From NCBI GenBank assembly GCA_004431415.1, contig QPMI01000453.1:310001-374000 (forward strand): DNA of 64,000 nucleotides. Direction: 5' to 3'. This stretch comes from Cyanophora paradoxa CCMP329 (taxonomy: Eukaryota; Plantae; Glaucophyta). A program made the position numbers and the translations under genes. Positions 1 through 56,600 of this stretch are shown here, in pieces. The notes below the pieces were generated by a model, which did no database searches, was not told where the DNA came from, and saw only the letters and a program-made list of their open reading frames with translations. Every line of letters begins with the position of its first letter. Positions within the stretch are counted from its first letter, which is position 1.

Positions 1-3000
1 CAGGGGACCGCCGCCGCCTCCGCCGCCGCCGCCGCCGCCGGCCCGCCCCGACGTGCTCGCCCGCAGCTGCGCCGCCGCGATCTCGCGTGTCGACGCCGCG
101 CCCCGCGCTGGGGGTACAGTCCGTCAGCGGGGGGGGGGGTAGGACGAGCAGGGGGCGGAGGGGGGTACCTATGGAATCGGCCTCGGAGGGGGTACAGGGG
201 AAGAGACCGCGGAAGCGGTACCGCTGCACGAGGACAGAGAGCCCCGAGAGATCTGCATTGAAAAACGGCTCAGGAAAAAAGGACACTGAAAAAAAGAAGC
301 GGGGGTAGGCGCACCCTGGTCGGGGTACGCCTGCTGGCGCTTGTGCTCCGTGGCGATGACCGTGGCGAGGTCGCTCCCGACCGCGACCTGGGGGGGTAGG
401 GGGGGTGGGGTGGGGGGGGGTAATGCGACGTCAAGACAAGAAGTCGGAGTCTATCCACCGCGGGCGCGCCCTGGCGCCTCGAAACGAAACCAAATCTCAA
501 TCTTGAATCTAATCTCTCGACTCCTTGCCCCCCCCTTTGCCTGAACCCTTGACCCCCTTTGCCGACTCGTTGCCCCTTGCTTGCTTGACCTAATCTCGAC
601 TCCTTGCCCCCCCTCTGCCTGACCCGCGCACCTCGAACTCTGCGTAGCGGCGCCAGAGGTCGGCGGCGCGCTCCCGGTCCTCCGGGCCCTCCAGCGCCTT
701 CAGCACCCGCTGGAAGAGCACCCGCGCGTCTGCGGCGGGGCGGCGCGCGGATGAGACGCGAGCGGAGCCAGGAAAGGAAGAGAGGGGTAAGGTAGGGGAG
801 TAATAGGTAATCGAGGTAATGGACTGCAAGCCGACGTAAGCCGAGCAGGGCCCCCGGCGCACTCTGCTCGTCGTTGAGCTTCTCGAGGAAGTCGACGTAC
901 TCGCATATGAACGCCGGCTCGCGGATGAAGCGCTTGAGGCCCAGCTCGAAGATGTTGCGCGCGACCTGCGCGAAGGGAGGTGCGCAGTAAGAACGCTGGC
1001 GGATGTGGACAGTAAGAACGGGACTTGACTCTCTCTCTCTCTCACCTTTGGGTCCTTGTTCGTGGCGTACTCTTGGAGCGCTGTGGAGGAGGAGGAAGAG
1101 GAGGGGTTAGAGGAAAGAAGGAGGAGAAGAAGGGGCGAGGGTGCGAGGGGGGGCGGGGCGCGCCGGCGGCGGTGAAGACGTGGTGCGTGCAGGCGGTGGA
1201 CTTGCGTGCGCGGAGGAAGACGCGCCGCGCCGCCTCAACGCCCTCGGAGCGCCGTGCGAAGCGCATGTACTGCACGAAGACCAGCGGGCCGGCGCTCGTC
1301 TCCATAAGCTCCTCGTACACTTTGCGCGCCTCCTGCTCGTAGTAACCTTAATAGAAAGAAAGAAAGAAATCGAGGCAATGCTTAAGAAGAACGCACGTCA
1401 ATGTTCTTTCGGGACTCCTCGAAGTCGGCGTGGGCGAAGTGGAGGACGAGGCACTTGGGGAGGGCCTTGCGCGCCCGCACGTAGAAGTCGTGAGCGCGGT
1501 CCGGCAGGCCCTGCTCGGCGAAGTACGAGGCGGCCTCGTGCCAGACGTCGGGGTAGTGCCGGAGGAAGTTGAGGGCCTGGTTGTACGTCGCAAGCAGGCG
1601 CCGCGCGAGGCCGGCCGCGTCCAGCCGCTGCCAGTTGAGGCGCTCCCACGAGAGCAGCTTGCGCCACCTCTCGACCTGCGCGACCGCTGCTCAGGGACGG
1701 CCGCGGGGCGAGTGCGCGCGCGCGAGCGAGCCGACCTGCTGGAGGTCCCGAGGGGCGTCGCAGGGCGGGCGTGCGAGGAAGTCGAAGCGGATGCCCTCGC
1801 GCTGCGCCTTGCGGTCGCGCAGCACGAGCCGCGAGTGCGCGTACTTCTCGCGGTACTGGTCAAGCAGCGACTTGGCCAGCTGCTTGTTGGGCAGCGAGAG
1901 CTCGAACGCCTCGTAGTCGCGCCAGACCGTGTCCATGTTCACCATCGGCGAGACGAGGGCGCGCTGGTAGGCCCGCCGCACGGCCAGGACCTTCGCGGGC
2001 TCCTCCTGCGCGCTCGCCCGCTGCTCCCGCAGGAACCGGATGTAGTCGAGCCTGCAGGTGGGTCAACGGCGTGAGTCTCACAGAAACCACAACGTCGTCG
2101 GAATCGATCGGAACGAACCAGATGGGCGTCGAGGACATGTCGAAACCGATATGGTTTAGGCTGAACTCGAACGCCTCCTGCACCGCCTCGCGCTCCCCGG
2201 GCCGGCCCCGCTTCACCACCTGCCCGCGCAACGCCGAGTCAAATCGCAGAAAGAACGCGAGCTCAGCGCGCGCCGCGCCGCGCTCGCACCGAGATGTACT
2301 TGATGTAGAAGCGCCAGAGGTCGACGTGGAGCACGTTGAGGAGGCACCGGTGGAAGAGCTTCTCGACCCGCGCGTTCTCCTTCGCCTCAAACTCGTGCTC
2401 GCAGTACTGCCGCCAGTACTTGCCCTGCGAGCCGAGGCGCCCGTGTCGGCCCGCGGAAAGGAATGGAAAGGACGCGCGGGGCGCACGGAGGTCGGGAAGA
2501 GCGTCACGAAGACCTCGTAGAGGTCTCGTGCGTCCCGAATGGGCATGCGCGCGGCTTCCTCCATGATCGTCATCCACGCAGCCGTGTCCCACTCATCCTC
2601 CCGCACTCGCGCCAGGGCCCGCGTGAGCTTGTCCCCGCGCGTAAGCTTCTTCGCCTGCGGACCGGCGACGCTCAGCGCCACGGGACGGGGGCGGCAGCTT
2701 GGGAGGCGAAGCACGGACCAGCTCCTCCAGGCGCTCCTTGACCGAGGGCTCCGGCGGCTTCTCCGCCGCAGGCGCGGGCGGAGGCGACTGCGCTCCAGCG
2801 ACTTCTTGTGCCGCAGGGGCCCCAGGTGCCGGCGCAGGCGAGCTGCCAATCGGCGATGGCGCGGACGGGGCTGCGGGCGGCGGTGCGGCAGCGCTCGGCT
2901 CGGTCTTCACGCTAACCTCCGGCGCTGCAGGTGCGTCTGTCGGGGCGGCGCCTGCAGGCGCTTGCGCGTCTGCTGGCGGTGGCGCGTCGCGGTCGACGCC

Positions 3001-3443: not shown

Positions 3444-6064
3444 ATGATCCACCAGTTCTTTGTGCTGAACAAAGAAGGACAGCTCATCCATGTCCGAACA
3501 TGTGCGCGGCTCGCTGGGCGTTGCGCGCCAAGGAACGCCTAGATCCGCGAAGCGCGTAGCTGCGGCCACGAGACCGTTAGCTATGCACGCCCGTGGCTCT
3601 GATCCATCGTTCGGCTGGCCTGGCGCCTCGCCCCCACCCGCGCGTGTCTCGCCTAGGCTTAGCGAGCGCTGACGCCCCTCCCGCGTCCAGACTCCGGGTT
3701 GGAGCTCGACAGGTCGCTGCTCACGGGCTTCTTCTCGAGCATTGGCAGCTTCACGGCGTCGCTCGCGGACCAGACGCTGCGGACGCTGGTGCTGGACAGG
3801 AGCAAGTTCACGTACATCGAGGCCGGCGACTACGTGCTCGTCGCGCACGGGGCGGCGGACGACGCGGACGCCATCGTCCGGCTGCAGCTCTCCTCCATCC
3901 TTCAAATGCTCACGTTCCTCGTCGGCGACCCGCAGCAGTGGTCCCCCGACACGCTCACCCTCGACGGCCTCGACGCGCGCCCGCCCCGCCCCGCCCGCCG
4001 CTCGGACAGGCCGCTGATCCGCCCGCTCGCGCGCGCACGCAGGACGTGATCGATCAGATCGTGGAGCGGTTCAACCACGACATCGCCGCCGTCGCGCAGG
4101 GCTTCCCGAAGGCGCGCGAGCGAGCGCGCGCGGGGCGATCGAATTCGTCCCTTCGGCGCCTGAGCGAGCGAGGCCCGAGCAGGTGGCGCTGGACAAGGGC
4201 GCGAGCGACCAGCTGGAGCGGCTGCTGGCGTCGCTCGAGGCGCACGGGGACGTCCAGGGCGCCGCGCTCCTCCTGGGGCGCTCCGTCCTCCACTCCCGCC
4301 TCACCGTCCCCGACACCCGCGCGGTGAGCGAGCTCGAGCTCGAGCTCGAGGCTCGAGGCTCGAGCTCGAGCCGGGGGGGGGGTACAGGTGCTTGCCTACG
4401 CGACGGCGCGGCCGCTGGGGGTGGCGGCGGCGCGGACGACGCCCGTCTTCAGCGAGGGCCGCTGGCGCCACCTCATCCTCTACCGCCTCCGCACCGCCTC
4501 CATCGCCCTCATCACCGGCGTCCAGGCCCGCCCCGCCCGCCCGCCCGCCCGTCCCCTAGGGAGGTCCCTGTATCTTGGCTTGGGCTTCCAGGCCCTTAGA
4601 GAGATCTTTGTGTCCTGGCCGCCCGCCCGCCCGCCCGCCCGCCCGCCCCGATCTCCTTAGCCACCGCGACCCACCGGAGCCCTCTATCTTCTTAGATAGA
4701 TCTTCAGAGGATGAGGGCGGCCCGCCCCGATCTCCTTAGCCACCGCGGCGCATAGCCCTCGTCACCGGCGTCCAGGCCCGCCCTCCCCGCCCGCCCTACG
4801 CGCCCGCCCGCCCGCCCGCCCCGGTCTCCTGCTCCGCCCTCCTCGGGCCCGGCCCGCCCGGGGCGACGTGGAGCCCTCTGTCTTCTTAGATAGATCTTGG
4901 CGGCCAGGCTCGCCCGCCCTCCCGCCCGCCCGACCGCCCGCCCGCCCGCCCCGCTCCCTGCGCCAGTCTCCCTATCCCAGGCTAAAAATAGAGCTTAGCT
5001 TCGCGGCGCCCCCCGCCTCCCTCCCTCCCCCGCCCTTCTCTGCCCTGAGCGGACGGCCCCTGCTCGGCGGCCTGACGTAACGCAGGTGCTGTACGACGCG
5101 CTGGCGCCGCACCTCGCCGCCTTCGAGCGGCACGTCGCCGACGCCGGCCTCTCCCTCCCCATCGAGGTCCGCCCTGCCCCGCCCCCGCCCCTCGCGTTCC
5201 GCCCATTGAGGCTTTGGCCGGCGCAGGAGCCGCCGGTGCAGCTGCGGCAGTTCGCCAGCCGCGAGGTCGTCGCCTTCGTCTACGGCAACGCCCGCTCCGG
5301 TCAGGTGAGCCAGCGCGCCGTACCCCTCAGACACGGCTCTCTCTAGACACGGCTTCTCTCTAGACGCCCGCTCCGGCCAGGTGAGCCAGCGACCGAGCGA
5401 GCGAGCGCGGCGCCGTACCCCTCAGCGGGCCGGGCCTTACCCCTCAGCGGGCCGTACCCCTCAGCGGGCCTTAATCCTCAGCGGGCCGTACCCCACAGCG
5501 CGCCGTATCCCTAAGCGGGCCGTACCCGTAAGCGGGCCGTACCCCTAAGCGGGCCGTACCCCACAGCGGGCCGTACCCCTCAGCGGGCCGTGACCCTAAG
5601 CGGGCCGTTCCCCTCAGCGGGCCGTGACCCTTAGGCTGAGCCGCCCGTCCGCGTGCGCAGTTGGTAGTGCCGCAGATGCGACCGGCGCCGCCCGTGGAGC
5701 AGCAGCGGACCGCCGACGCCTTCCGCTGGTTCACCAACCGCGCCCTGTACCCCCCTCCCCTCCCTCCCGCCCTCACGCCTCGAACCTCATCTCATTCTCG
5801 TACCCTCGCAGGATGCTCCTGCAGGACGACGTGCGTGACGTCTTCCTGTACCGGGAGGGGTACCGCTTCCACGCCCACCGGGAGGGGCCCCACCTCCTCT
5901 ACGTCCTCTGCACCGACCAGGTGGGGCCTTGGCCTTGGCCTGGCCATATGGCCTCCCCCCCCCCCCCCCCTTCGCTCCCCCTCAGGCGAGCTCAGGTGAG
6001 GGCGGGGGACCTGGAGGGAATGACGTCGGAGATCCAAAGGACCTGCGCCCTCCGCTCTTCCTGA
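3444..6064 (+). CDS. Tri-longin-domain protein (Fuzzy/Mon1/HPS1-type Rab GEF subunit), multi-exon
   Basis: Longin-like start MIHQFFVLNKEGQLIH; then 'LLTGFFSSIGSF..LRTLVLDRSKFTYIEAGDYVLVAH'; second unit 'GDVQGAALLLGRSVLHSRL'; third unit 'VVAFVY..DVFLYREGYRFHAHREGPHLLYVL'. Consistent introns, e.g. 3975-4042 and 4112-4182. Subfamily not resolved. Confidence 0.7.
5413..5635. repeat. Intronic minisatellite, ~17-bp unit gcgggccgtacccctca, about a dozen degenerate copies
   Basis: Directly visible tandem repeat. Confidence 0.85.
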
Positions 6065-6229
6065 GCCAGGCCACGTACCCCCCTTCCCCCCTTCCCCCCC
6101 CCCCATCCCCCACCCCCCACCCAACCTCTCTGCGCACCCGGGCCCGCATGCACTCACATGAAATTAATATGAAATTAAAAAAGAAATACGTTTACAAATG
6201 GGAGCGCCCAATGATCTCGGCGTCTGCGC

Positions 6230-9200
6230 TCATCGCCTCGCCTTGGTCGGCGGTGCTGACGGCCGTGGGGGCCCCATCGCCCCAACCGGCTCCGGCAGCG
6301 GGGCAGCCCCGGCCTCAAGTTGCCTCTTGCGCCGGTTAACGTTGCGGCCCGGCCCCGGAGCCGCCGAGGCGGCACCGGTACTGGCGCTGGCCAAGGAATC
6401 CCGGTCCTCGTCCTCCTCTCCGGCCCGGCTGGCCATGGCCACCGGCTGCAGCTGCTGCATCCCCTGCCGGCGCCCCGCGATCGACGACGATGCCACGGAC
6501 GACATGTCGTCCTCGACGACCGGTTGCAGCCGTACGCGTGAGGACGTCGATGCCGGCGCTGCGGCTGCGCTGCGGCTGGGGCGCCCCGGACCAGCACCGC
6601 GGGGGCCGGGGCCGGAGCCGGATCCGATGTCGATCTCTCTGGCGGCACCCGAGGAGGAGGAGCTCGAGAGCACCGAGGGGGGTGCATGCGCCCTCGGACG
6701 GCTCGGGCCTGCGGATGGTCCAGCCGCCGCCTCGGGCTCGTCGGGCTCCTCGTGGCCGGCAATCGCAGCCTCCGGAGCCTGTGACAGGGAATCTTCCGGC
6801 GACACGTCCTCTTGATGTTGTTGAAAATCGAGTGCCATCAGCGCCTGGCCAGAATCAAGCGCAGGTCAGCTGCAGGATCGGGGAATACCGCTAGCTTGAG
6901 TTGCTCCAAGTTGGCCAAACGCACCGAATGCGTGGGTGGTGCGGTAATAAAAGTCCGCCTCTGTGTGTAGCACGTTTCCGCGATCGGATTCTTTTCCTTT
7001 CCACGATTGGCAGGATGGTTGCGATCGAGATCGTACAGCTTAAAGCCTTGCCAATCCCAGAACTTGTAGACGCTCAACGAGAACTTTAGTTCCTTCAATT
7101 CGCTCGCCATCATGGTGAGCATGGTGTCGCCTTTGATGACGTACTGGAAAATCAGCCTCGTGTCCCTGGAAATAAATAATACACGTCAAGATCTCGTCAT
7201 CGGGGACTAAGAAAAAGGAGGCCGCACGTGAGGCTCTGAAATGGATTCACGCTGAAGCCTTCACCTTCTGATTCGCACAGCCAGCTCCAGAATTCGTATT
7301 CGTTCCACGCTCGCGGTGCCTTCCATTCATTCAGCGAATGCGCTCATTCAAACAAATTACGATGAGCACCTTTTCACTTCTCAGCGACTTCAGCAGATTC
7401 TCATTCTCTTTCAAGAGCGCTTGCAGTCTGCGCTTGATATCGGGGAGCTCCTTGAACTCGTGGAGTGGCAATTCGCTCGACATATCCATTTTCGTTTTGA
7501 TTTCGTCCCACGACTGGAGGAAAGATTCAAGAGCAGCACTGCGATTGAACTGTCAATGAACGATAATAGCACGGACGAAACAAAAACGCGGACGGGTCAA
7601 CCGCGCTTGCAGCTGGTGCGCCGGCTTGCGATTGCAATTGGCGCTCGGAAGCTGGAGCGTACGATTGCAGCTGCGGAATCGGACAATTAGACGATCGGCA
7701 AAGAAGCCACTGCATTAATATTAAGACAGCAAAGCAGAATCTTGAACCTGCGCCCCGCCCTCTTGCTGCTTCTGCTGCTGCTGCTGCTGTACATGTTCTT
7801 GTGCGATTCGCGGTTGAGCCCTGCATGCCATAAAGAGAATCAGATGGACATCCAGAAATTAAATATCGATTCTGTGAACGCGTACGGCTCCGCATCGTGG
7901 TACTGCTGATCCTCCGACTCCTTCGCATGCTGACGAGTCTGTTAGAATTCGAATAGAGTTCCTCTCGCGAAACCAGTGCACGTGGCCCCTCACGAACCTC
8001 CTCTTCTTGCTGAGCGCTCGACGCCGCAGGGAGCAGAAGGAGCGGGCTTTCTCCCCTGTCGACGTCGGGCACTGGAGAGGCGCCGTCCTGCTGCGCTAGC
8101 GCTCCAGGCGACCGTGGGCGATCGCGAGCGCTCGACGCTGCAGCTGCAGCTGCGGGGGGCGGAAGGAGCGGGCCTTCGCCCCTGTACATGTTGTCGGGCA
8201 CTGGAGAGGCGCCGGCGCCGTGGGCGGGGAGTTCCCGGTCGAAGGCCTGAGCGGCGGATCCGGAGGGCGCATGCGCACGCAGGGCGTCCGGAGACCTGGA
8301 ATCGACAAGTCCCCGTGGGAGGTACCGCTGCCAGCCGAGATCGATGAGCGAAGTTCGGGAAGGCGGGTGCATGCGCATGCAAATGCCGACCTGCATCGCG
8401 CGAAGGACATCTTCGGCGCTGCAGCTGCTGCCAGTTGCTACGTAGAGGCACTCAAAGTTCACGCCGACTAGATGGAAGTAGTCCTCGAGCTCGGGCTCTG
8501 CCACGCCAGCGTTCTTCTTAGTCGCCATGAACGCCTCGTAGTCCTGCCGGGAGATTAGGAAACGGAATTCTTGAGAGCCGAACGGGAGATATTTAGCACG
8601 GACCTTTGTCGCACTGATCGTTGCGTAAGCCTGCCGGGAGAAACGTAAAACCTTATGATCAAGAAGCAAATATATTTGTGGACGATGGGAATGTATAGTG
8701 CACCTCGAAGGCCGAGTCTACGGTCTTCCATGGCCACTTGCCAGGGAGTGACACAAGAGGGAGAGCCCATTTCCGTGGCAGCGTCTGCACCGAACCGGGG
8801 GATCATGATTAGGGACGAAGGGAGGGTGGAGGAGGATAGGATCATGACTAGGGATCCAAAAGGGAGGAGAGGGGCGTGGGCGGCACGCCTCCAAGGAAGC
8901 TTGCACGTAATCGCCAGTCTTTTCGCGGTAGGTGAAGTACAAATCGAAAGGCACGTGGTATTTTGGCTTAAAAGCTCGGGAGCGCTGCTACAAAATCGTA
9001 TCAAGTTATGATCAGCGGACAGTACTTGATAAATAAAGCATCTGCAATATTAATCTCACCATGTTGATGTCTTGCGACAAGCCGACTCGCGCCTTCCCAA
9101 TGGCAAGGATGCTCGGGGCATTTGCCCACACGAGGACGGCGCCCTGCCCGCGCGATGCATATAAGTCACGAAGGCATATATAACACTAAATTTTAACCGC

Positions 9201-11533
9201 GAAACAAACACGAACGTCTTCACAATCCAGCGGGCCGCCAAGGGGGCGGAAGGAGACGCCTCCAAGCAGCTTTTCCATCTTTTCCAGCTCCTCGCGATCG
9301 TCGCTCAAGTCCGAGTCCCCAGCAGGCGCTGAACAGCCCGTGATCATGAGCGCGAGGGGGAGATCGTATATAAGAGAGCATGAAATTATTCACTTTGCTT
9401 TTCGATTTTCAAAAACACTCTGTGCGGAGGTGCCGTGTGGGGGCAAATTAAAGTTCAGAGTCACAAAACCACGGGCGTTTAATTGCAAGCTTAAGGAGAT
9501 TTGCGCATGCGCGCACCCGCAGGCATTTCCGCGGGCGCGAACCCCATTCATGGCGCTCGAGCTCGAGCTGGAGCTCGACGAGGGGGCGTCGGCATCGGAC
9601 GGAGACGGGTGCGGATGCGGATGCGGATGCGGGCTCGAGTCGGGTTCGGGATCGATCGCGGGCTCGTCCTGAGCCCCGGCGGATTCGCGATCGTCGGATC
9701 CGTCGCGATCGTCGGATCCGTCGCGATCGAACGACTCCGACGTCGCCGGCGACGGGCCCAGGGGCTGCTGCTGGGGGGGAGGTGGCGGGGGGGCGGAGGG
9801 GGAGGACGAGCTCGAGGTGGGGGCAGAAGCGGGGGAGGGGGAGGGGGAGGAGGGGGCGGAGCTCGAGGACGAATTCGAAGGGGCAGCAGCGGAGGAAGAG
9901 GACGAGGACGAGGACGAGGAGGCAGCTGCGGCAGAAGATCTAGATGAGGGGGCGGATCCTGAGGATGGGGGCGACGAGCTCGAGGCGGCGGTGCAATCGA
10001 CCTGCGGTGAAGAAGAAAGGGGCCAGTTAAGATATCGATGGATGCAGCCTTTGAATTCAAATTCGAATAGCAGGGGTACGGCACCCGCGACTTTCTTCCT
10101 CTATTATTCTCTGCCCGCGGCCTCCTGCTCTCGTCCTCGGGCTCGCGAGTCGTCGTCGCCACCTTGGCCTGCCATTAAACCTTCAGGGCCGCATACGAAA
10201 ATTGATTCTAGATCTGGGCGGATTCGAACCAGGAACTTGATGAGCGCACCGGTCCCCTCCAGGACCTCGCGGGGTTCCTGCCGAGGGGGGGAGGGGGGGG
10301 GGGATACTCACGGTTTGCGTGGGGGAAAGATGGGAGGGGGGCACCCAGGTGTTGAACGCGGGGTCCCACAGGCACCATTTGACCAAGAACTCCTCCACGG
10401 TCTTTCCGCCCTCGATCTGCGCGCGGCCCGGTCGACCAAAGCTCAAATCCGGGAGGCGAGTTTAATTTTCGCGGCAGGACTCCGGGACTGGCACGGACCC
10501 TCTCGCGCCTCTGTTTGATCGATTCGACGAAGTACTCAGCCTCCTCAGCCGCTTTCTGAAGGGCAGTTGCAATCGGTGGGGGGCGGGGACGGGAGGGGGG
10601 TGGGCGGGGACGGGAGGGGGGGACGGGAGGGGGGGGGGGGGGGGGGGGCAAGAGGGGAAAGCTGGGAGTACCGGGTTTCCATCGAAGGCGCCCTTGTCCT
10701 TCAGGAACTGTTTGAGCGCCTTGGCGACCTGTGGGGGTACGCTTATTATAAGCAAGGATAGTCACGCAGCCAATAGCTGCAGCTGCAGCTCGCCTCGGGC
10801 GCGTCTTTCCTCTTGTCGAAGCACCCGACCTGTACGGGAGTGTAAGACGCGAAAGTGACGGAAACAGTGCAAGGAGCGGCCGCGGACCGCGCTCTGTGGA
10901 GAGCGACCCTCTCTTGAGAGCGACGCCCTCTCTCCAAACATGGCGCGAAACCATGGCTCGCCGGCGTATTCCCACAGCTTATTGTTGAGTCGGGCATCCA
11001 TCATGTCGTGCTTGCCGTTCGCCAGGAGCTCGAAGAGCTCCGGGCCGCGCAGCGCGATCTTCATGCGGTCGTGGAAGCGGCCCGCCGCATCCTCATCTGC
11101 GGTCCAGTGCCTGACCTGCAGCGCGTGATCATGAGCTCCAGGGACGACATGTACAGCTAGCTATAACGTGAGATCGGCGCCGCGGCCGGCCGCGGCGCCG
11201 GCGCCCCGCGCGCGCGCACCCGCACAGACTTGTGGCTGACCTCAGCGTACCACCTGCGGCGCAAATCAGCGCGCGAAGCTGTGCAGGACAGCGAAGTTAC
11301 TTGCATTGAGCTACCGGCTTTCTTTAGGTGAACGCCGAAGAAACGGGACGGCTGCAGCTGAGCGACGGAGTTGTCCGCGACGGGTCCCTCCGTCTCGCCC
11401 TCGCTCTCCTTCGACTCGTCCTCGCTCTCGGGACGACGCCTCTACGCACGCGGGGCGGTTGATAAGCGCGCGGTTCGAGCTCGCGGGCGGTCGACTCGGG
11501 CACCTTGCGTCTGGCTCCCCGCGAGGCCGCCAT
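6230..11533 (-). CDS. Multi-exon nuclear protein with NLS, AP2-like DNA-binding domain, chromodomain and SAM-like domain
   Basis: ATG 11533 MAASRGARRK|RRRPE. AP2-like 'SRFFGVHLKK..WYAEVSHKS(VR)VRHWTADEDAAGRFHDRMKIALRGPE' (~11350-11040). Chromodomain 'EYFVESIKQR..IEGGKTVEEFLVKWCLWDPAFNTW|EPREVL' (~10540-10255). SAM-like 'PRAWNEYEFWSWL..IFQYVIKGDTMLTMMASELKELKFSL' (~7320-7070). Stop at 6230. That all exons belong to one gene is inferred from strand and the splice phases checked. Confidence 0.65.
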
Positions 11534-11673
11534 CAATTTGCTGGGGCTGGTGCAAGTCACCTCGAGCTCGCCAAACGCTGCTCGTCGCTGAGGGAGAACG
11601 TTACCGCTGTACCCCCAAACACTGCTCTTCAAGCAGCTCTTGCAGCTCTTCAAGCAGCTCTTGAAGCGCACAT

Positions 11674-11941
11674 CAAAGCCGCCGCACGGTCTTGTATCGA
11701 TAGGCGCACACGCAGATCAGCGGCTAGCTTCCTGGCAGCGTTGACCAGTTGCACTGCCAAGGCAGGGGCCTCCAGCGCAGATCGAAGACGTCGTGCAATC
11801 GATCCAAGCGGGCACGCCGAACCCGAGCGCATGCACGCCGAGTCCGAACGAGCTCCGGCGTTGCGCATGCCCGCAGCCGGGGTCGCGGCGAGAGCAGGAG
11901 GCTCAGGCGCGAGGACTGCAGACGCGGAGCGCCAGTCCACG
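11674..11941 (+). repeat. Diverged duplicate of 15301-15578 (upstream region and first exon of the + strand F-box gene); this copy lacks the ATG
   Basis: Shared blocks 'tgtatcgataggcgcac', 'cctccagcgcagatcgaagacgtcgtgcaatcgatc' and 'gcgcatgcccgcagccggggtcgcggcgagagcaggag..tcaggcgcgaggactgcagacgcggagcgccagtcca'. Confidence 0.9.
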
Positions 11942-53621: not shown

Positions 53622-56600
53622 GACGGCTTGGAGCTCGGTGACGGCTTGGGGCTTGGCGTCGCGCTGGACTGAGGAAACACGCTAGGGGATGTCGTCGGGC
53701 TAGACGGGGCGACAGACTGGCTCGGAGACGGCGAGGCGACCTCGCTAGGCGACGGCGAGGGGATCACGCTAGGCGACGGCGACGGGCTGGGGCTGGGCGT
53801 CGGGCTCGGGCTGGGTGATGGGCTGGGGCTGGGTGATGGGCTGGGGCTGGGCGTGGGTTGCGCATAGCGCACTGACAATGCAAAGTCGCCAGAGAAGAAA
53901 GAATAACCTTAATGGAACGCAAATCAGAAAGTGAACGAGCTGCTGCCGGAAAGTGCACGACCTGCTGCCGTACCTTCGATCGCTAGGTAGTAACGGGAGC
54001 CAGCCACAACCTGGACTTTGACCGTAGACGCGAGGAACCGCGCAGGAGGATCATTGCATCCCGAGTCATCATCTGCACAATAAAGCGAATTCAGATCAGT
54101 CGCGGATAATTATATAACGGCCTAGATCTACAAGAAGATAGACGTCGACTGGGAAGCGCACCATTCGATGCCGTCGCCATGGCCTCTGCACTGGTTCCTG
54201 AACTGCTGGCACAGACCGTGTCTGCGAAAAGCCAAAGTTGCGTGTCGACACGTGTCAGCGGAGAACACGTCGACACCACGAGCTCTCTGCGCCAAAAACG
54301 TACGCGTCCCAAAAGTAAGCTCATGGTGAAGTGCAGATCTCCATACTAAACACCAGCTGCACCCGCTTTTCGGAGGGACGATCGAATACCACGCCTCGCC
54401 GCTCGCGTGCGTGGGCAGGTATCTCGTGCGGTTGGCGCCGGCGGTCGAAGAGACCACAGAGACGGTCTCGGATGCGTTGACCTCCAGGTTTGTGATCGGC
54501 GCACAAGACCAGGGCGCCTCGGGACTTGGCGTTGGCGACGGCGCCACAGACGCGTACGGCGAGGCTGACGGCGCCGGCGTTGGGTTGGGCGAGCTGCGGA
54601 CCCTGTCGAGGAGGGCGGGTGGCACGGCCCACACGCGGACGTCGCTGCCGGAGCCGCCGGTGACCACAAAGGAGCCGTTCCTCGCGATGGCGAGCCCGCG
54701 CTTGACCGTGTCCCCCGGCGGGAGCACGATGGCGGCCGCCAGCTCGCGCCTGTCCACGTCCCAGAGGTAGACCTTCCCCATGCCGTTGGAGGTCGCCGCC
54801 AGGCGGCCGTCCTCTGTCACGGCGATGCTAAGAATCGGGGCGTCGTCGGGGTCCCGCATGGTCCCGAGCCGCGTGCCGGTGGCGGCGTCCCACACGCGGA
54901 GGGAGTTGTCTTCCCCGACAAAGGGACCCGGCGGGCCGCCTCCCGCAGAGAAAATGCGTTTCTTGTCCGCAGAGATCGCGATGGCACTCACGACGTCGGC
55001 GTGGGCGAAGAAAATGGCGTATGCGCCGAGAGAAGACTCAGAGAAGAGTAAGATGCGCCCATCCTGGAGCCCCACGGCAATTTTAAAGTTTGGATAGCTG
55101 GTCGTGGCGATGCATATGCAGCTTCCGAATAAATGGTGACTCGGTGTCCATGATTGATAGGGAGCATCCGTGAAGAACTGATAGGTATTCGTCTTGCTTG
55201 CCGTTGGCATCCATGCGTAGGGCGGTTTATAATTGGGATCGTACGTGAAGCTCATAACGATTTTCTCTGTGAACGCGAAGCTCAGAATTAATCGCGTGTC
55301 GATTTTTGATAATGGGAAACGAGTCGGGTCCGGGCCGACCGGCGGGGCTTGGAGTGAGAAGGTACGGGATACCCCCGGGAGAAATCAAGACGCTTCTGCG
55401 GAGACGGTTCAATTGCAAGCCCGGTCATGAAGCGCGTGCGCGTACAAAGGATAGATTCTCACCCGGCATCGGATGCATAAAAGTAGCGACTGCCGATATC
55501 ATTGCTAAAATAATGGCCAAGGTACATTTGGCTCGAAAAATTGAAAAATCTGAACGGGGTGCGAGCATTCATTATATTATGTGATGGCTTCAGTCGGAGC
55601 ATTCTTACGCGTACGCTTTAATGTCAAGTGACTTTGCAGCAGCGAATCCGTCATCTGTCATCGAAACATCCACAGACTCCTCGTATCCACCCGGGAGCCA
55701 CTCTCCCTGGAACGTTCCGTTGGCGGCTGACGCCAGATCCCACCAGCGAATCAGGCTCGCGAAGGAGCCTGAGCTAGCGCTCTCACGCGGTCCAGAGCCC
55801 CCGACGAGGACGGTGCGCGCGTCGGACGACAGAACCAGGTGGTTGACGGGCCATGGCAGACGGAGGGGTGGACGCTGTTGGTCGAGAGACGAGTTCCAGT
55901 ACGGCTTTGAAGCCAGCTGCCCAGAGTGGACGCATGCGGATGCGTTCCCGGCCCTGCCAATGCCAATCTTAGAGTCTCTGCTCATAAAGGTAAATACATA
56001 TGAAAAAGCGGCGAAATAACCAGCAGCTTGCGGAGGCGTTGATATTCCTGTTGGCGCGCATGCGTACATGTAGTATAAGAGACCCGAAACGCATTGAGAA
56101 TGCGCACATCGAAAAGGAACGCACCAAACCCGAATGTAGTTACTTCCAACGTAAACACGTGCCCCGTCACGCGAGATGGCAAGACCGAGATTCCTTCGAA
56201 TACCGATCTTTGACACGAACGACGCAACGTGCCGCCCGGTCGCAATTTCCCACAAGAGAACCTCGGGGCTGTTTCCACTCGTTACAGCAAATTTCCCATC
56301 GGGCGTCATGACGACTCGGTGAAGTGGTGCGCTGTTGAGCTCGGTCATAGTGCGGACAACGTCACCGGTGGCGAGATTCCAGACGCGGAGAGTAGCGTCG
56401 CTGCCTACGGAGAGCAGCACGGACGCGTCTGTAGACACGGCAATGCCGTTCACGGGACCGGCGTGGCAGCACAAAGTCCGAAGAGTTGAATAGTCGGATG
56501 CATTGTAAACGCTCACACTTCCGTCCACGAAGGCAGCAACGATGAGAGAGTCGGATCGACCACCGAACGCAACCGCGAGGGCTGGCGAGCTCGAGTTTCC

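Follow-up and report, generated by a model that had tools for sequence, protein, structure and literature searches.

A minus-strand gene of the glaucophyte Cyanophora paradoxa, which lies within 64,000 nucleotides (nt) of contig QPMI01000453.1 (positions 310,001 to 374,000; this stretch is called the window, and all coordinates below are counted within it), encodes a chromodomain of the Polycomb/CBX type preceded, at a distance of about ten residues, by what is accepted here as a highly divergent AP2-fold domain. The gene is real, spliced and transcribed; its 26 exons, separated by 25 introns of 50-116 nt, lead from an ATG at 11533 to a stop at 6230-6232, and the coding length of 3492 nt including the stop (1163 codons) is divisible by three and contains no internal stop. 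We favour, with a probability of roughly 0.6, the reading that this is a single nuclear gene whose product combines a cluster resembling a nuclear localization signal (NLS), the AP2 fold and the caged chromodomain into a chromatin-bound regulator coupling the reading of DNA sequence to that of methyl-lysine; the remainder of the protein is best explained as long disordered linkers, a probable coiled coil and two unassigned regions, one globular and one C-terminal. An original prediction, made from the letters of the window, had proposed a single protein with AP2-like, chromodomain and SAM-like segments. The strings quoted for these segments and for the NLS (RRKRRR, which is formed at the junction of exons 1 and 2) are all present on the minus strand where they had been placed; the AP2 fold and the chromodomain are retained here, while the SAM domain is not.

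The AP2-fold unit and the chromodomain

The segment originally called AP2-like is distributed over several exons, with SRFFGV in exon 2, WYAEV in exon 3 and RHW...MKIALRG in exon 4. FFGV and WYAEV occur once each in the six-frame translation of the whole window; together with the helix motif EDAAGRFHD of exon 4 they stand in the order known from AP2 domains, and the distance from the first strand to the helix motif is 38 residues versus 35-50 in paralogues, the likeness of the three motifs to the plant AP2 consensus having been judged by eye. A profile of 19 paralogous units, from which the row of the window gene was left out, matches exon 4 with an E value of 4.8e-13, and every invariant column of the family alignment A1 (D, G, L, Y, F) is retained there. 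Exon 5 was identified because the same profile also matches, if weakly (domain E 0.17), the frame that holds it, at the profile positions following those of exon 4. Searching PDB sequences with exon 4 by phmmer gave designed helical repeat proteins alone, by way of the string PELFELL, and these were discarded.

The fold itself was predicted on a paralogous unit, P0008:434-550 (alignment A2), for which a model with a predicted local distance difference test score (pLDDT) of 93.1 and a predicted template modelling (pTM) score of 0.88 was obtained; it has strands at 15-19, 22-29 and 32-38, a long helix at 41-56 and three further helices. In a Foldseek comparison of this model with the PDB the top eight rows all belong to AP2 domains (TEM1, WRINKLED1, AtERF1), seven of them with probabilities of 0.80-0.99 and one with 0.66. 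VIA-align returned AP2 structures at Z scores of 8.7, 8.3, 8.1 and 6.0, the next row being an unrelated one at 4.4, and aligned AtERF1 over 59 of 63 residues at 1.9 A. A search by shape in the ESM Atlas led to an AP2/B3 cluster, a chlorophyte AP2 cluster (template modelling score 0.68 by query) and a bacterial HNH cluster automatically named ERF-like. Because of the unit structure, the membership of exon 4 in the profile and the uniquely placed strand motifs, the window gene is accepted as carrying a predicted, highly divergent AP2 fold.

The unit, about 100 residues long, belongs to a family that seems to be both undescribed and restricted to this lineage. Exon 4 (76 residues), compared by phmmer with 1.84 billion representative sequences, gave eight weak rows, five of which are unit-bearing proteins of Cyanophora; the others (P0001, P0003 and P0007) are spurious, owing to repeats, TPR or the lack of a unit, and no homologue outside Cyanophora was found among these representatives. 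With P0010, a further unit protein distinct from the window gene that was found in a homologue search with P0004, the unit is confined to seven proteins of C. paradoxa, the window gene among them (relatives from EukProt EP00741). It is present in 3-7 tandem copies in P0002, P0004, P0006 and P0008 and as a single copy in P0005. A conserved extension of 55 residues carries the signature EY.GE.FYRALF ... VGVHD ... RL.AFL. The first-strand motif, intact in the window gene, is degenerate in P0005, P0004, P0006 and P0010.

The tandem arrays of AP2-fold units with a helical extension in P0002, P0004, P0006/P0009, P0008 and P0010 recall the multi-AP2 proteins of apicomplexans. P0004 (about 810-887) and P0010 (about 1050-1125) also share a conserved C-terminal domain of some 75 residues that has no Pfam family. 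A resemblance to the unit's C-terminal helix that is probably due to chance was noted elsewhere in the window, in 23 residues on the minus strand at 54358-54426; they are 61% identical to P0006 777-799, and the profile gives an E value of about 0.3-0.5.

The chromodomain was recognized by Pfam (Chromo, PF00385) with 26.4 bits against a gathering cut-off of 25.1 (E 6.4e-6), in the stretch holding exon 8 only; it is the sole match in the window gene, the sub-threshold rows (VWA_N2, CCDC-167, INO80E and others) obtained with all exon-bearing stretches and the exact exons having been discarded as noise. The 24 residues of exon 8 alone match the PDB chains of CBX4, CBX7, Pc, CBX8 and CBX2 with E values of 0.004-0.9. 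Three aromatic residues at the cage positions had been predicted, and these are found as the Y of EYF (exon 7) and the W residues of VKW and CLW (exon 8), the W..W pair being aligned with those of CBX4 and CBX7. Exon 8 stops after NTW and is spliced to EPREVL..LIKFL, a canonical C-terminal helix, with no read-through to VPPSHL. Exons 7 and 8 align with the chromodomain of P0005; exon 9, which the aligner had put in the wrong place, was assigned to the C-terminal helix by eye.

P0005 (EukProt tig00021275_g19875.t1, 536 residues) is the only other protein found in which an AP2-like unit (232-332) is followed by a chromodomain (366-398), again after a short linker, and a homologue search with its residues 205-410 returned P0005 itself only. 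P0005 and the window gene are 46% identical in the helix and extension and 52% identical in exon 8, with no similarity beyond the two domains; since the order of domains is kept at about 40-50% identity within the module and nothing is alike elsewhere, the AP2-chromodomain module is conserved as such. P0005 differs from the window protein in two Cys-rich repeats at its start, in its degenerate first-strand motif and in its unassigned C-terminal domain, which is also different from that of P0004 and P0010. That one chain should carry both a DNA-binding domain and a histone reader is, in general, a familiar design; the combination of AP2 and chromodomain has no match in the literature searched and, in protein collections, only the Cyanophora paralogue P0005, and it is thus a new domain architecture made from known domains. 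The novelty originally claimed for the combination is supported, within the literature searched, for these two domains.

Known relatives and a possible mode of action

The closest structural relatives of the family unit are the plant AP2/ERF domains of AtERF1 (1GCC), the RAV-type TEM1 (7ET4/7ET5) and WRINKLED1 (7WQ5), which have the same three-stranded sheet packed on a helix (Z 6.0-8.7, root-mean-square deviation 1.9-2.7 A); the alignments with the TEM1 and WRI1 constructs (85-86 residues) take in the extra C-terminal helices of the unit as well, and YRG-like, WxAE[IV] and EEAA..D motifs are recognizable by eye. The family differs from them in an identity of only 16-29% over the structural alignment, in the silence of PF00847, in the 55-residue extension and in the frequency of tandem arrays of 3-7 units.

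As to the chromodomain, CBX4, CBX7, Drosophila Pc, CBX8 and CBX2 are the best solved relatives of exon 8, with the W..W cage pair and, after splicing, the sequence NTWEP in common; in the window protein, unlike in Polycomb/CBX, an AP2-fold domain, predicted to bind DNA, precedes the chromodomain. Neither a Pc box nor another part of PRC1 turned up downstream in the Pfam scans, none of which was a search aimed at so short a motif. As in HP1 and LHP1, the caged chromodomain is N-terminal and a long hinge comes after it; unlike HP1, the window protein has no chromoshadow domain on any exon according to Pfam. The third cage residue of HP1 is Y or F, and that of the window protein is W, as in Pc/CBX.

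The mode of action proposed is one in which the AP2 sheet would read a DNA motif while the chromodomain would bind a methylated lysine of histone H3 on a neighbouring nucleosome. The protein might then occupy only those sites where motif and mark coincide, or the machinery of the mark might be tethered to the motif; the coiled coil may dimerize the protein.

Several points weigh against such a regulator. Pfam AP2 (PF00847) has no match on any window exon, on the full paralogues or on the 20 units, even at an E value of 10, and the family profile A1 found no AP2 chain among PDB sequences. The fold was predicted on the paralogous unit P0008:434-550 and not on the window's own domain, which spans five exons. 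DNA binding, the mark that is read and the outcome (repression or activation) are matters we infer. The two RNA contigs that cover the gene do not overlap, and no listed RNA contig bridges 9754-9896. There is, finally, the precedent of Plasmodium falciparum, where PfAP2-HC and the chromodomain reader PfHP1 are physically coupled in heterochromatin as two distinct chains (PMC8105651). Targeting of PfAP2-HC does not require its AP2 domain, so that an AP2 protein can be part of heterochromatin with that domain unused; in the window protein, AP2 fold and chromodomain share one chain.

By analogy to PfAP2-HC, the window protein might be a chromatin component recruited by its chromodomain, with an AP2-like domain that no longer binds DNA and serves as a structural or protein-interaction module. 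The divergence that hides the domain from Pfam and the degenerate first strand of four paralogues fit this idea, which we regard as unlikely without being far-fetched; unlike P0005, the window gene retains FFGV, WYAEV, basic and aromatic residues on all three strands and the spacing typical of the family.

Should the window protein be the proposed reader of motif and mark, it would unite what is usually divided, as the tie between histone marks, repressive or active, and DNA sequences is usually explained by separate recruiter and reader proteins. The fusion of an AP2 fold with a Polycomb-type chromodomain has persisted in two diverged paralogues; it hints, in the manner of a "Rosetta stone", at selection for such coupling and offers a compact test system. 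According to profile surveys, AP2 goes back to the ancestor of green plants (Viridiplantae), and red algae yielded no example of it (PMC6872490, PMC12567131). C. paradoxa, a glaucophyte, possesses no fewer than seven genes carrying an AP2 fold that is missed by Pfam, and therefore AP2-type regulators in early-branching Archaeplastida may be undercounted; separate acquisition of these regulators is the alternative. The wider reach of this is uncertain because no homologue was found beyond Cyanophora.

The downstream regions

The segment proposed as SAM-like consists of a W..W.WL string in exon 24 and IKGDTML...ELKEL in exon 25. Read by eye, its W, WL, G, F, I-G and L..LKEL are placed roughly as in the SAM consensus, which amounts to a loose motif resemblance to the SAM domains of Polyhomeotic and Scm, and the fit would need room for about ten extra residues. 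Neither SAM_1, SAM_2 nor SAM_PNT (PF00536, PF07647, PF02198) was matched in exons 24 and 25 at E values up to 10, and no SAM match was found among PDB sequences (phmmer) or ESM Atlas features; a chitinase returned by the PDB search with exon 25 (E 1.2) was discarded. Exon 25 folded alone by AlphaFold gave an unusable model (pLDDT 46.3) with strands rather than helices. Aromatic and beta-branched residues, arranged in hairpin-like pairs, abound in this exon, given which a helical SAM bundle appears less likely for the two exons. Profile and structural matches, by which the original prediction was to stand or fall, were thus obtained for the AP2 segment and not for the SAM segment.

This bears on the full scheme as first put forward, namely that one polypeptide nucleates on DNA through AP2, reads a repressive mark through its chromodomain, polymerizes through a C-terminal SAM domain and so spreads silencing. 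An AP2 fold and a caged Polycomb-type chromodomain speak for it; because SAM is unsupported, however, the silencer that would "nucleate, read and spread" is left with no module for spreading and is pure inference. We consider this scheme improbable; silencing and spreading by the window protein are speculation, and the proposed self-targeting is neither supported nor contradicted by the results. Slightly more doubtful still is a bolder variant, in which a one-chain reader of "motif AND mark" would have the globular region and the coiled coil/C-terminal region as effector and oligomerizer and would found and propagate a chromatin state at its own motifs; this would be the logic of a Polycomb response element without separate recruiter and reader, evolved independently in glaucophytes.

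The globular region (exons 12-18) has no match in Pfam or among PDB sequences and no usable one in the Atlas; the AFOR_C rows returned by an Atlas feature search with exon 18 (low recognition, 120 shared features) are attributed to chance. A homologue search with a stretch of 396 residues (7530-8717) found nothing, being swamped by low-complexity words and limited by its length window. Within that part of the gene, exon 19 (7998-8327), a Pro/Ala-rich linker, contains a motif of some 45 residues (GASPVPD ... RGE.PLL ... AA.SSA) in duplicate. Exon 23 probably forms a coiled coil, judging from its sequence; in Pfam it gave weak, sub-threshold coiled-coil rows only (CCDC-167, E 0.0025).

Transcript, exon structure and surroundings

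Part of the stretch is present in 11 of the 22 public runs listed. Three runs guessed to be RNA (X1, X2 and X5, from two studies) and the best DNA run (X8) were aligned to 5900-11890. The DNA contig of X8 is collinear with the window over 6107-9760, and the contigs of X1, X2 and X5 skip at least 14 intervals, which are bounded on the plus strand by CT..AC or CT..GC, that is, by GT/GC..AG introns of a minus-strand gene. A spliced RNA contig of 2502 nt spans 6189 to 9753. Another, of 954 nt, comprises 10885-11113 and 11304-11441 with 456 letters downstream and 96 upstream; 35 contig letters between 11304 and 11113 fit the 34-nt micro-exon at 11253-11220 that encodes WYAEV, flanked by the GC donor of exon 2 and by a GT donor. 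Exon 1 is supported by contigs X2 rec.7 and X5 rec.9, which reach 102 and 96 nt past 11441.

In exons 5-11 the joints were inferred from splice sites and frame and then checked against contig coverage per 200-nt bin (depth 4.9). From 10899 down to 9900 the bins were predicted to hold 77, 84, 73-74, 117 and 84 aligned letters, and 77, 84, 74, 116 and 84 were observed; models in which exon 8 runs to 10312, or which lack exons 5 and 10, were ruled out by this coverage. An apparent joint of 209 nt (7676-7884) conceals a 73-nt exon with a CAG repeat, which explains 67 extra contig letters. Compared with the splicing originally proposed, the model thus gains exons of 36 nt (10829-10794), 84 nt (10168-10085) and 73 nt (inside 7676-7884). 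Three of the 25 introns have GC donors on the minus strand (11304-11303, GCAAGT; 10793-10792, GCGAGC; 8888-8887, GCGTGC), two of them backed by joints or lengths of RNA contigs and one by coverage. The resulting model is given in Table 1.

Table 1. Exons of the window gene, with their contents and the evidence for them
Feature	Position	Strand	Content and evidence
Exon 1	11504..11605	-	5' untranslated region (UTR) to at least about 11605, start codon 11533-11531, 10 basic codons; first ATG, donor GTGCCC
Exons 2-6	10672..11441 (11441-11305, 11253-11220, 11115-10888, 10829-10794, 10728-10672)	-	basic/acidic leader, predicted AP2-fold unit and helical extension; contig pieces, bin coverage
Exons 7-9	10230..10555 (10555-10499, 10416-10345, 10277-10230)	-	chromodomain, cage Y, W, W; Pfam, coverage
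Exons 10-11	9517..10168 (10168-10085 basic; 10001-9517 Ser/Pro/Asp-rich low complexity)	-	linker; bins of 117/116 and 84/84 nt predicted/observed, frame open
Exons 12-18	8391..9419	-	globular region; all joints in RNA contigs
Exons 19-22	7594..8327	-	Pro/Ala-rich with internal duplication, then acidic and Gln-rich segment
Exon 21	7820-7748	-	CAG repeat; from 67 extra contig letters and GT..AG sites
Exon 23	7370..7538	-	probable coiled coil; heptad-like pattern read from sequence
Exons 24-25	6925..7319	-	segment proposed as SAM-like
Exon 26	6189..6844	-	acidic Ser/Ala-rich tail, second basic cluster, stop 6232-6230, at least 41 nt of 3' UTR; contig X1 rec.1 covers 6189-6843

The question of whether all 26 exons belong to one transcript turns on the unbridged 9754-9896. 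Of the two contigs, the upstream one is expected to reach down to about 9897 and the downstream one goes as far as 9753, which puts both ends inside the 485-nt exon 11; a repeat at 9761-9932 was masked by the alignment tool, and the contig ends lie within or just below it. Since both contigs end in one exon at a masked repeat and the frame is open throughout, a single transcript is very likely, and the same holds for the one polypeptide that had been predicted. The gap would also be compatible with two adjacent genes, an AP2-chromodomain gene upstream and a globular/coiled-coil gene downstream, whose contigs merely abut in a low-complexity stretch; however, the upstream contig enters the shared exon via the acceptor at 10001, the frame continues from ATG to stop with a total divisible by three, and the gap contains no splice, start or stop signal, which makes two genes very improbable.

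Chromodomains are also found in the integrases of chromoviruses, as are AP2 domains in homing endonucleases and integrases. An origin of the gene from, or its carriage by, a mobile element could draw on this, but scarcely deserves credence: there are 25 spliceosomal introns, none of the exons matches an integrase, a reverse transcriptase, an HNH protein or a transposase, and the DNA depth is even at about 35 except for low-complexity peaks; the surroundings bear no sign of a mobile element either, terminal repeats not having been looked for. Low G+C as a sign of foreign origin was likewise ruled out: the window DNA is G+C-rich and eukaryotic, the G+C content at third codon positions reaches 0.5 or more in 25 of 26 exons and falls short of it, at 0.44, only in exon 12 (26 nt), and introns and amino-acid composition account for the lowered G+C.

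No search returned the gene's own annotated protein, though paralogues from the same proteome are present in the protein collections; there may be no public model of the gene, or one without exon 4. A short direct repeat at 11625-11660, immediately before the 5' UTR, draws an unrelated RNA contig, with a loose end at 11642 in all three runs, which inflates the depth in bin 11500-11699. Among the other long open reading frames nearby no family was matched; the downstream neighbour at 1860-2849 (minus strand), with matches to Suf (E 2.6e-10) and PRP39 HAT repeats, is probably an unrelated RNA-processing factor.

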